A DNA stretch of 64,000 bases, taken from NCBI GenBank assembly GCA_026936335.1, contig JAPMXV010000042.1, positions 558,001 through 622,000 of the forward strand. The letters run 5' to 3'. Below, one piece after another: positions 18,301 to 63,540 of the stretch. The position numbers and the translations under genes are program-made. Under the pieces are notes generated by a model. It did no database searches, was not told where the DNA came from, and was given only the letters and a program-made list of their open reading frames with translations. The stretch's first letter is position 1; each line of letters starts with the position of its first letter. The DNA comes from Mantamonas sphyraenae STR306 (taxonomy: Eukaryota > Protista > CRuMs).

Positions 18301-18437
18301 AAGCAAAAAAAATTGAGCTTCCCTGCCGGGAATCGAACCCGGGTCTGGTGAGTGACAATCACCTATTCTCACCACTATACCACAGGGAAGGGACCCGTTC
18401 AGATCGCTCTAAACGGTTACTTGATTGCTCGAAACTA
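18301..18437 (-). repeat. Inverted repeat copy 1 (tRNA-Asp plus 48-nt leader and trailer); partner at 23691-23826
   Basis: Reverse complement matches 23691-23826 except for the length of the T run. Confidence 0.95.
18318..18389 (-). tRNA. trnD: tRNA-Asp(GTC)
   Basis: Cloverleaf TTCCCTG/CAGGGAA, anticodon arm GGTGA-TTGTCAC-TCACC, T-arm CCGGG-TTCGATT-CCCGG, G73, followed by a T8 Pol III terminator. Confidence 0.97.
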
Positions 18438-23690: not shown

Positions 23691-23826
23691 TAGTTTCGAG
23701 CAATCAAGTAACCGTTTAGAGCGATCTGAACGGGTCCCTTCCCTGTGGTATAGTGGTGAGAATAGGTGATTGTCACTCACCAGACCCGGGTTCGATTCCC
23801 GGCAGGGAAGCTCAATTTTTTTGCTT
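23691..23826 (+). repeat. Inverted repeat copy 2 (partner 18301-18437)
   Basis: Direct comparison of the two segments. Confidence 0.95.
23739..23810 (+). tRNA. trnD: tRNA-Asp(GTC)
   Basis: Identical to the minus-strand copy; anticodon at 23772-23774; T7 terminator downstream. Confidence 0.97.
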
Positions 23827-59268: not shown

Positions 59269-61183
59269 TCAAGCCTCGACCTCGATCTTGTCTTCCTTCT
59301 TCTCGTCGTCGTCGACAGAGTTGCTCTGTGCTTCGCTGCTGTTGGAGACCTCGGTGGCAGCCTCTGCGGTGGCAGGCCACTTGGCACGGTAGAGACAAGT
59401 GTAGGCAATGTGCCAGTCCCCTCCACCGGCAAGCTTGAGGACGTCGTCGGCGGAGATGGCCGTGACAGTCTCGTCGTCGTACTTCCACCACTTGCCGTCG
59501 CTGTCCTTGGTCCAACCGACGTAGTGACCTCCCTCACTGCTACGTCCCTTGTGGGTGACGACACCAATGAGCTCGTAGTAGCCGGTGACGTTGAAGGATT
59601 CGTCGAGCTCAATCTCCTCGCCGTCGTCGGCAGCGTCGTCGGTTTCCATGGCGTCGCTGTTGGAAGCGGAGGAGGAGGAGGAGGAGGAGGAAGAAGAAGA
59701 AGACGCATCGGCCTCTTCGATCATCTTGGCACGCACACCACGGAGCTTCTTCTTGAGATCGGCGGCACAAAAGTCGTAGACGTCGAGCTCAAGCGGATAC
59801 TTGACGGGTCGGAGGACCTTGACTTTCTTCTCGAGGTCCTGACGCCAGAAGAAGCGGACAAAGTTGACGGTGAGGTAGCGAGGGAGCTCGGCAATGGCCT
59901 GGGTCTTTGTAAAGACGGCGTTGCGGCCGAGGAGGTCTGAGTGCTTCTCGATGTTCTCTGTGAGGACAACGCCCTCGTGGAGGTAGTTGGTATCGGAAGA
60001 AATGCTGACGGAGAGCTTGCGGAAGGTTTCCTCGGTGATCTTGGGCGGTTCTGCGTCGGACTCTGCGTTGGCGAGGGTGACTTGCATCTTGCCTGTAAAG
60101 AGCGAGTCGACGACGCGGTTGCCCTGTTCGTCCTTGACGGACTGAGAGAGCAGAGTGAGCAGCTCGCCCCAGAACTCGTCTGCATCCTGCTGGACGTAGT
60201 AGCCCTCACGTTGCTCTGCGAAGCGGGGGTACATTTGGCGAAAGAGCTGTAGGGGTGCGTGGACGGGCGTAAGCAGGCTGGAAACAGGTGGGAAACAATG
60301 TGCACGTGTGCATATCGTGATAGCCCAGGGTGGGGGCGGGTGGATGAGGGCGTGCACTCACCTGGACAAAGAAGGACGGGGTGATCGCGTCGCCCTTCTG
60401 GTTCATCTGCTGGAATAGCGCCTTGAGCTGGAGGAGGAGGGAGCTGTGGGGGTCGTAGGAGTCCAGGGTGTTGCTGAAGGGAGAGAACGGGAGGAGTGAT
60501 TGGCCAGGGAGTGCAACACGAGATGTAAATGCGGTGTAGTGGGTGTGGCGGGGGGTGTGAGTTTCGTGCGCGCCAATTCGGGAGCCGGGGAGCGAAAACG
60601 CACTTTGCAAGAGCCTCGTTGAGCTCGGGGACAACCTTGAGGCACTGGAGGGAGGCGTTCATGTAGCAGGTGTTGCCGAGGTTTGTGAGGCCTGGGCTGG
60701 TGAGCATCTGGAGGAGGGTGGGGTATGGCAGGAGGGGGTCAGCAACGTGGCGGAATGTGGTTGGCGAATTGGGTCGGAAGGGCGGAAAGGAATGATGCGG
60801 GAAGGGTGAGGAGCAGAGAGGGAACAGCGGTGATTAGGCGTCGGGCGTAAAGGTGGACAAGGGAAGGAGGCAATACGTACATCCTCGAGGATGGCGTCGT
60901 TGCCCTTGACGTCCTCGATGAAGGTGACTTCTTCGGTTTGCTCTGCGAGAACCTCTGCGGTGCCACGGAGAGTGATGAGCATGCCGTCTTTGAGCTTAAA
61001 GTCAGCCCAGTCGCTCTCGTCGTCGACGACCTTGCCCTTGATGATGACCTTTTGGCGGTCGACGGGCACGCTGGTGAGGCTGTTGAGCTGACTCTTGAAC
61101 ACGAGCGGGCTCTCGCTCGTGTGCAGCTGCACGTCGTCAAACTTCTGCTTGCCCCACTTGACCTTGACCGAGTATGTGCTCAT
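59269..61183 (-). CDS. USP14: Proteasome-associated deubiquitinase USP14/Ubp6
   Basis: UBL domain VKVKWGKQKF; GLTNLGNTCYMNA..QCL; QQDADE; HKGRSSEGGHYVGW; L.GGGDWHIAY. Confidence 0.96.
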
Positions 61184-61353
61184 GGGTGTGTGGGATGAGG
61201 GGATATGAAGTGGTATGGGTGGATGCGGGGGCGGAAACTGGGTGCAGGCGGCTTGTTCGCCGCTGGCCAATGTGGTCGCGAGCCCGTATTTACGTCGTGT
61301 CATGCTGAAATCAATATGCACCTGTGAGGCCAGCGAAAACATCGCGAGACTAC

Positions 61354-61432
61354 GTGGTATGATTCTACTTTTGGGTAGTAGAGGTCCCGGGTTCGATTCC
61401 CGGGTCGCCCCACTTCTCGGGCGGCTGGTCTA
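61354..61432 (+). tRNA. trnP: Circularly permuted tRNA-Pro(TGG): nt 15-73 at 61354-61411, 7-nt spacer, nt 1-14 at 61419-61432
   Basis: Rejoined sequence GGGCGGC TG GTCT AGTGGTA TGAT T CTACT TTTGGGT AGTAG AGGTC CCGGG TTCGATT CCCGG GTCGCCC C forms a complete tRNA-Pro cloverleaf. No acceptor 5' strand lies upstream of 61354. Confidence 0.9.
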
Positions 61433-61442
61433 TTTCGCGCGA

Positions 61443-61452
61443 TTTCTTTTTT
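61443..61452 (+). terminator. Pol III oligo-T terminator of the permuted tRNA
   Basis: TTTCTTTTTT lies downstream of the relocated 5' segment, not after nt 73. Confidence 0.7.
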
Positions 61453-61641: not shown

Positions 61642-63540
61642 TTACCAGCGCCACATGTTCATCCAGGCTCGGAGGCGCACGTACTCGGGCAGGGTAAAGA
61701 CAGAGCCGACGGCGGCAACGGCCGGGTTCTGGTCGTAGATGTAGCGGCGGCCGGCGGTCTTTACGTCGTCGGCGGAGACGGCATCGACACGGCCAAAGAT
61801 TTCGCCAGGGCTGAGGCGGCGACCGTAGGTGAGCATATGGCGGCCGATCTCCTCGCAGTTTGCGCTGGTGCCATCGAGAGACATGAGCAGGTTTGCCTTG
61901 AGCTGGTTCTTGGCGCGGTTAACCTCGGTCTCGGTGACGTCGAAGCACAGGCGCATCCACTCCATCTGGGTCTCAAAGACAGCCTCCTCCAGAGTGGCCG
62001 GGTCGGCGACAATCTTGAAGCCAAAGAGACCGGTGTCGTTGTACGAGGTGTTGAAGCTCATGAGGGAGTGAGCAAGGTCGCCCTCGGCCAGGGTGGCGCA
62101 GATGTTGGAGGACACGTTCTTGCCTCCGCCCGAGTTGCGGTCCCAGCAGCCCACCAGGCTCTGCATGACCATGAGGGTGAAGAAATCCGGGTGGGTCCAA
62201 CCCACGCCCTGCACAGCGACGGCTACGTGGGCCTGCGGGATGCTCGAGTCGTGCACCCGAATCTCGGAGCCCGTAAACTCTGTCGGGGCCTGGTCAGCCA
62301 CTGCGTTGTCTCGCGACAGGCCGCCGAAGCTCTGGTTTGCCAGGTCGACGAGCTCGTCGTGGTCAACGGGGCCGCATGCAGCCAGCACCATGCGCGGGGC
62401 CGTGTAGTACGTGTCGATGTACGTCTTGAGGTCGTCCTGGGTGATGGAGCGGATGTTGCTCTCGGGACCCAGAATGGTACGTCCCAGCGCCTGGCCCTGG
62501 AAAGCGGTGGCGTGCAGCTGGTCCATCAGCACCTCGTCCACATGCGACTCGACGCTCTTGAGCTCGCGCAGGATCACACCACGCTCACGCTCGATTGCAG
62601 ACTGCTCCAACTGCGAGTTCTGCAGGATGTCGGACAGAATGTCCACGGCCTGTGCCACGTCCTTCTTGAACACCTTTGCGTGGTACACTGTGCGGTTCCA
62701 CAACAGGCAACAGGGTGCACACATGGGACCAGAGGGTGTGTGTCCACAAGGCGGCAGTGCATGTGTGTGCATGTGTGTGTGTGTGTGTGTGCCCAGGCAG
62801 AGCTGGTGTCAGTTTTCCAGCCTTCAAAGCTTTTCCTCTTGGCGGCCGCCAAAACGCGCCGCGGCCCTCGCTTCCTCCGCGCGCATGCAGAGCACAGAAA
62901 AAGGGAGACAGAAGAACACGGCATGTTGCGTGTTGCACACTGGCCAATCTGCTTGTGTCCTGCATGGGTGGCGAGGGCGTAACCAAAGCCCTAGCCCGCG
63001 TGCTGCGCGGTGCGGCAGGAAAAGCCAGCGAAAGCCCTCCCGGCGCTTCGACCAGCGCTCAATCGGGCGTGCGCTACAGCGGCTGACACTCACCCGTCTG
63101 CTCTCGGCTCGTGTATGCGTTCAGGTGACCGCCCATGTTTTCGATTTCAATCTCCAGACCAGACTGCGAGCGCTTATTCGTTCCCTGTGGCGTGGCGAGG
63201 CGCATGGTCCGAAAAGTGGTCAGTGGAATGCAGCTCCCAGCGGCGGAGAGCCCGTGCGCCGCAAGTGACTCACCTTGAACGCCATGTGCTCCAGAAAGTG
63301 AGCCGTGCCATTGTTCTTCTCGTTCTCGTAGCGCGAGCCTGTGTTGACCCACACGCCCACGGTGGCCGTCTCGCCATAGAACTCCTGCGACGCGACTCGC
63401 ATTCCGTTGTCGAGTGCGCTCACCTGCGTGGGAGGCACATTCAGAATGGACGCCGGGTAGCGCGTCTGCGCATGAGCCACGGCGCTGCTGGAGAACTGAC
63501 GGACACCCTGCTTGCCCTGTTGCACGGTACGGCTGAACAT
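61642..63540 (-). CDS. PMPCB: Mitochondrial processing peptidase beta subunit
   Basis: Transit peptide; GSRYE...[14 protein letters not shown]|[42 protein letters not shown]. Confidence 0.95.

Follow-up and report, generated by a model that had tools for sequence, protein, structure and literature searches.

We begin by considering the permuted tRNA genes that have been described so far. Up to August 2026, reviews list such genes for no group other than red algae, green algae, archaea and one algal nucleomorph, and they do not decide between an ancient and a convergent origin. A published model derives them from a tandem duplication of which the outer parts are lost (PMC3978253), and a 2014 table of 34 permuted genes, none of them for proline, gives the junctions as 20/21, 37/38, 50/51, 59/60 and, doubtfully, 15/16. 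The genes of green algae and of the Bigelowiella nucleomorph (Maruyama 2010) are nearly all split at 37/38, and all belong to algae or algal remnants. A permuted trnP-UGG is known from Auxenochlorella (PMC12633428); it is apparently also split at 37/38, the legend equating its parts with the exons of a gene that has an intron. In the archaeon Thermofilum pendens, the permuted genes for tRNA-iMet and tRNA-Tyr (Chan 2011) are the sole sources of their anticodons, and their relaxed bulge-helix-bulge (BHB) sites are recognised by a broad endonuclease.

The locus that we compare with these systems lies in a window of 64,000 nucleotides (the whole stretch of DNA that was analysed, to which all positions given without a contig handle refer). 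The window comes from Mantamonas sphyraenae, a bacterivorous flagellate kept in xenic culture that belongs to the CRuMs, the lineage branching basally to Amorphea as its sister, for which a near telomere-to-telomere FALCON assembly exists (PMC10492846). An earlier note on this DNA, made from the letters alone, had correctly taken the host to be a flagellated protist. We read the locus as a functional permuted nuclear tRNA-Pro(UGG) gene, to which we assign a probability of about 0.87; its maturation would proceed via a circular intermediate, by analogy with the known genes.

The layout is that of the algal and nucleomorph genes, and with Auxenochlorella both the layout and the tRNA itself are shared. 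With Cyanidioschyzon merolae, the likeness includes a 3' part placed before the 5' part, a short acceptor-loop spacer (7 nt here, within a range of 7-74), BHB-like junctions outside the anticodon loop, a T-tract terminator, and a genome that also contains non-canonical introns, one of them at 14/15 of a tRNA-Arg. The two differ in their junctions (20/21, 37/38, 50/51 and 59/60 in C. merolae versus 14/15, 18/19 and about 21/22 in Mantamonas) and in proline, which is absent from the permuted genes of C. merolae. They also differ in machinery, because C. merolae is without identifiable Sen15, TFC1 and TFC3 and has upstream TATA boxes, while in Mantamonas both Sen15 and TFC1 are found and a TATA system is not; a C. 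merolae-type expression system (TATA boxes with loss of TFC1/TFC3, and no Sen15) is not what we find. Thermofilum resembles Mantamonas in the relaxed sites and in that no second source of the anticodon is found, but it is archaeal, with a 59/60 junction, an (alpha-beta)2 enzyme and a TATA/BRE promoter. The expectation of the earlier note that 14/15 is a new permutation junction is borne out by the published table, where this position occurs solely as an intron site. The UGG gene falls outside the published junction types I-V (20/21, 37/38, 50/51, 59/60, 15/16), and the doubtful 15/16 junction of O. tauri tRNA-Ser(CGA) is the nearest position to its own. Relative to the literature searched, in which subscription journals are thinly covered and neither permuted tRNAs nor D-arm introns of tRNAs are mentioned for Mantamonas or CRuMs in the title or abstract of any paper found, the lineage, these junctions and their pairing with a four-subunit endonuclease are new; the class of gene and its pathway are already known. 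Such a gene in CRuMs, neighbours of animals, fungi and amoebae, speaks directly to the question of an ancient versus a convergent origin of permuted tRNAs.

The tRNA-Pro(UGG) locus

All parts of the gene lie on the forward strand, with the 3' part upstream of the 5' part and an intervening sequence between them, and the letters and coordinates given by the earlier note for the two pieces, the spacer and the terminator are correct. The 3' piece (61354-61411), identified from the sequence and by ARAGORN on the rearranged sequence, comprises tRNA positions 15-73 (G15 to C73). It contains the anticodon TGG (61372-61374), the T arm (61387-61403) with an intact Pol III B box (61390-61400, from sequence and pattern match), the 3' strand of the acceptor stem (61404-61410) and the discriminator C (61411). 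A 7-nt intervening sequence (61412-61418) closes the acceptor stem and, following the model of PMC3978253, would be the substrate for RNase P and for tRNase Z. The relocated 5' piece of 14 nt (61419-61432) supplies positions 1-14, with a predicted cut after A14 (61432). The trailer (61433-61443), made up of a bulge and one strand of an outer helix, comes next, and an oligo-T terminator (T6, 61447-61452) sits 3' of the 5' piece, as in the co-linear tRNA genes of this genome.

When 61419-61432 is joined to 61354-61411, ARAGORN returns a complete 72-nt tRNA-Pro(tgg) that keeps the conserved positions. It has an acceptor stem of 7 bp (6 Watson-Crick pairs and 1 GU, as the note had counted), the usual proline D arm, and anticodon and T stems of 5 bp each. 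Left in place, the gene receives no ARAGORN call, the only tRNAs called in the 64-kb window being two tRNA-Asp, and Rfam on the window reports just a T-arm fragment at the locus and misses the gene. The 14-mer at 61419-61432 is unique on both strands of the window under even a loose acceptor/D-arm test; by the strict test, its chance occurrence is about 4e-8 per site and about 3e-6 within 80 nt. A split (trans-spliced) tRNA was considered and rejected, with the parts 7 nt apart and a single terminator. A tRNA pseudogene was rejected as well, with the stems intact and no co-linear proline gene found. As a side observation, the two tRNA-Asp genes (18317-18389 and 23739-23811) form a pair beside which the GC skew flips, near 24 kb; on many contigs of M. 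sphyraenae, tRNA genes are often paired 4-13 kb apart, many of them inverted.

The gene lies between two protein genes on the opposite strand. The upstream, divergent one (59272-61183) encodes a ubiquitin-like domain and a UCH protease (USP14/Ubp6-like; Pfam PF00240, PF00443); two of its exon frames were checked, and its introns are visible in RNA contigs. The downstream, convergent one is represented by the last exon (61642-62772) of an M16 peptidase (MPP-beta-like; PF00675, PF05193). An A-box-like 12-mer with CCAAT (61264-61275, forward strand) lies 90 nt upstream of the tRNA gene and about 80 nt from the start of the divergent gene. CCAAT is present before some co-linear tRNA genes too, but the 12-mer is more likely the CCAAT box of the divergent gene than a tRNA element. 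The idea that it is a relocated A box finds no support, as no counterpart precedes the CGG or AGG genes described below.

Proline tRNAs in the genome

The earlier note had proposed a search for a conventional tRNA-Pro(TGG) gene and for other permuted tRNAs. Among the matches listed genome-wide, there is no intact co-linear proline gene, and three more permuted genes are found, all for proline. The four tRNA-Pro genes found are thus all permuted, and they read with UGG, CGG (two copies) and AGG anticodons. The CGG copies, found by DNA search, are inverted relative to each other (C70:110454 and C70:118295) and near-identical, a likeness that reaches about 100 nt upstream and continues downstream for at least 1.3 kb. 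The AGG gene (C70:284280; L084:1501-1625) was found by a proline anticodon-arm pattern. Every one of these genes rebuilds to 72 nt. Their spacers are 7, 13 and 49 nt, that of AGG being the 49-nt one and structured, and a terminator follows the 5' piece in the CGG and AGG genes as it does in the UGG gene.

The junctions are three different ones, all in the D arm: 14/15 in UGG, 18/19 in CGG and within 21-25 in AGG. The conserved D-loop is restored only by 14/15 for UGG and only by 18/19 for CGG. In AGG, a 3-nt redundancy allows the junction to be placed anywhere from 21/22 to 24/25, with 21/22 the best fit to the helix rule. Despite their different split points, the UGG and CGG genes give mature tRNAs that differ in nothing but the anticodon arm, and three D-loop bases that are upstream in one of the two genes are downstream in the other; each gene therefore confirms the D-loop of the other. 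The AGG redundancy and the UGG/CGG junction shift fit a permuted ancestor whose overlapping ends may have been trimmed differently.

The wider census agrees with this picture. Among the matches listed, co-linear genes are present for all amino acids except proline, and the 5' piece of the AGG gene is the one place in the genome where a proline D arm runs uninterrupted. Genes for tRNA-Leu(TAG) and tRNA-Arg(CCG), also sought as hidden genes, are not found among the matches listed, so the census is strong, yet it or the assembly may be incomplete. (In a sample of 3571 codons, CTA is rare, with 6 occurrences; CGG is not, with 39.) CCA makes up 22 of the 112 proline codons in ten open frames, so a tRNA that reads it with UGG is needed. 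Generic T-loop/spacer/A-box/terminator patterns recover just the proline genes, the remaining matches being at control level, and about 45 unexplained T-loop matches that were read individually yield no further permuted tRNA; on contigs past C46, the T-loop matches are covered by narrower patterns only. Standard annotation would overlook every proline tRNA in genomes like this one.

Some unusual co-linear sequences were also seen. Besides the ordinary initiator, there are two tandem odd tRNA-Met(CAU) genes (C30:470057; L053:151-224 and 372-445) with A1-U72 and a GAUC T-loop. A tRNA-Ile(AAT) copy consisting of the 3' part only (C34:419036) lies between an inverted pair of intact Ile genes, and a mutated tRNA-Phe copy (C34:619074) lies between an inverted pair of intact Phe genes.

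Processing site and machinery

We turn our attention to the pairing between leader and trailer. The leader carries GACT (61348-61351), which can pair with GGTC inside the 5' piece (61427-61430), and the upstream cut is predicted 2 nt beyond GACT, between 61353 and 61354. This 4-bp central helix, proposed in the earlier note, is 4/4 paired at the cut register with pair probabilities of 0.88-0.90. The outer stem that it proposed, CGCGA/TCGCG, is not favoured (probability 0.06); the leader strand 61341-61346 pairs instead with 61438-61443 as the outer (h') helix, with a probability of 0.94. The BHB geometry holds for the central helix at the cut register but not in the strict hBHBh' form, for there is no h helix and the trailer bulge is 4-6 nt. 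With a predicted central helix that runs to 6 bp, into the bulges, and without an h helix, the site is better called BHB-like (relaxed, HBh'-like) than strict. As a relaxed site, it has the 4/4 central helix, the 6-bp outer helix and a pairing that is specific to the gene.

This specificity is seen when leaders and trailers are exchanged among the three kinds of proline gene. The UGG leader-trailer duplex is at -10.8 kcal/mol and falls to -3.4 and -4.4 kcal/mol with the trailers of the other genes; overall, own duplexes are at -10.4 to -10.8 and swapped ones at -0.8 to -4.4 kcal/mol. Shuffling gives P values of 0.027, 0.025 and 0.004 for the three genes, and flank pairing of equal strength occurs by chance in 4 of 53 co-linear genes. 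At the CGG and AGG sites, the central helix is 3/4 paired, and a helix shifted by 1 nt pairs better.

D-arm cutting is not confined to the proline genes. The tRNA-Arg(UCU) gene (C1:187250-187370, minus strand), which ARAGORN misses, has a 13-nt intron at 37/38 and a 29-nt intron at 14/15 that is BHB-bounded, its central helix pairing 4/4 and its outer helix being 5 bp long. Both elongator tRNA-Met genes (C54:420319 and C54:426057), miscalled by ARAGORN as Arg(tcg), have a 29-nt D-arm intron at 22/23. Splicing in the D arm is therefore something that the cell has to do anyway. Multiplied across the five D-arm sites, the probabilities of central-helix pairing at the cut register come to about 4e-5, a rough figure, with the registers fixed by the tRNA consensus.

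The earlier note had also asked for an inspection of the SEN genes. Searched exon by exon, with the exons left unjoined, the genome holds homologues of Sen2, Sen34 and Sen54, plus Sen15 (E 4e-12). In the frames of both the Sen2-like and the Sen34-like catalytic subunits, the Tyr/His/Lys triad residues are visible, which we take to correspond to the human residues. RtcB is found at two loci, the RNase P RNA gene is present, and there are two tRNase Z-type matches. (The Sen15 gene, C54:409183-409550, is about 1.5 kb from an intron-bearing tRNA-Ser(CGA) gene.)

For transcription, the suggestion of a non-standard Pol III initiation is not supported. The leader stands in for tRNA positions 1-14, so that the B box keeps its usual distance from the likely start, and from this spacing we consider that the UGG gene is probably anchored by its intact B box. 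Tau95/TFC1 is matched (E 4e-14); TFC3 was not detected in the genome search, a weak PF04182 match to it being Rpc34. No TATA system is seen as an upstream promoter motif (TATA-like sequences precede 3 of 52 co-linear tRNA genes), and the upstream regions have a mild AT-rich zone only, in which the permuted genes are no different in AT content.

The layout, the rebuildable cloverleaf, the gene-specific pairing and the processing genes are all observed from sequence. According to the model, which follows Cyanidioschyzon merolae, Pol III would make a single transcript of leader, 3' piece, spacer, 5' piece, trailer and U tract. The acceptor stem would fold as a hairpin, and the leader would pair with the 5' piece and the trailer to form the relaxed BHB-like site. 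The Sen2/Sen34 endonuclease would then cut each strand 2 nt 3' of the central helix (i.e., after A14 and before G15), RtcB would ligate the ends into a circle, and RNase P and tRNase Z would excise the 7-nt loop, with CCA added afterwards.

The difficulty with this scheme is the enzyme. Four-subunit endonucleases are described as acting on 37/38 introns only, by a ruler mechanism, and other positions are linked to (alpha-beta)2 enzymes; the same 2023 review asks which architectures permit other intron positions (PMC10485636). Mantamonas resembles human and yeast in having homologues of all four TSEN subunits, but it needs cuts at no fewer than five D-arm sites, where the human and yeast enzyme is described as 37/38-only. 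With all proline genes found permuted, an ordinary-looking splicing enzyme probably cuts at sites regarded as out of reach for its animal and yeast counterpart. The frog enzyme can cut model BHB RNAs in vitro, so such an ability is not unprecedented; we know of no natural D-arm substrate for a four-subunit endonuclease. We give slightly better than even odds to the reading that the Mantamonas enzyme cuts a relaxed BHB in the D arm without the 37/38 ruler and that all proline decoding depends on it. As part of this reading, the 14/15 and 18/19 junctions in otherwise identical D arms suggest that the permutation point can slide. Were it true, permuted tRNAs would be a general, overlooked eukaryotic feature and not an algal oddity. 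For this question of specificity, Mantamonas supplies four Sen subunits that can be cloned and no fewer than five natural substrates with D-arm sites.

Competing explanations and relatives elsewhere

The permuted-gene reading has held against the two checks made of it, i.e., the search for a co-linear proline gene and that for a misassembly. The short-read contigs split at a 31-mer common to the UGG and CGG copies, and no single one covers the whole UGG gene, which leaves room for pieces swapped by an assembly artefact. We regard such a swap as barely credible, because in each of two DNA runs an Illumina contig (61382-62756) goes from the T arm through the spacer and the 5' piece to the terminator, which is the permuted order; in one of these runs a second contig (59716-61410) takes in the leader together with the 3' piece; the gene has no joint listed against it; and four loci on two contigs have the same layout. 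The DNA runs may come from the source study and therefore check the assembly, not the biology. In the only transcript-like run, spliced mRNA of the neighbours is present and no contig lies over the UGG gene, as expected of an mRNA library. The permuted genes could, on the other hand, be dead relics of a tandem duplication, the working co-linear genes being missing from the assembly. Duplication with loss of the outer parts gives the same layout (PMC3978253), and the partial Ile copy, the mutated Phe copy and the two expected anticodons that were not found all lend this some colour. We nevertheless consider this very unlikely: all three proline anticodons would have to be absent together from a near telomere-to-telomere assembly, and the perfect stems, the terminators after the 5' pieces and the leaders that match their own trailers only speak for working genes.

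Another possibility is that the UGG gene is functional but matures by a different route, with different cuts or a different nuclease, by joining in trans, or as a two-piece tRNA in which the nick stays in the D-loop. The BHB-like sites are relaxed and unlike each other among the three genes, the 1-nt-shifted helix is the better one in CGG and AGG, the AGG junction is ambiguous over its redundancy, and the four-subunit enzyme is said to require a folded tRNA body. We consider this route unlikely, since a single junction restores the conserved D-loop in UGG and in CGG, cutting and ligation at the 14/15 intron of Arg(UCU) must follow the same geometry, and the two pieces share a single transcription unit and its one terminator.

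Returning to the circular pathway and the permuted layout itself, we searched for the proline arrangement in metagenomes. The scan picks up 57 loci, most of which are co-linear tRNAs in tandem or SINE-like copies, with no D-loop-type permuted tRNA-Pro among them; no viral contig scanned has the layout. Five contigs, which fall into three kinds, carry a permuted tRNA-Pro; every one of these genes is split at 37/38 and rebuilds cleanly. In one kind (L155:1123-1174 and L183:7712-7763), a 37/38-permuted tRNA-Pro(AGG) directly follows an intron-bearing co-linear tRNA-Pro(CGG). This contig, with 67% GC and a neighbour protein whose best named matches are pelagophytes, is probably a pelagophyte example; for stramenopiles, we found no account of permuted tRNAs. 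The others (L137:11858-11915, L185:11412-11469 and L180:1270-1327) are eukaryotic metagenome contigs with 37/38-permuted tRNA-Pro (UGG, CGG) and 4/4 central helices; L137 looks algal.
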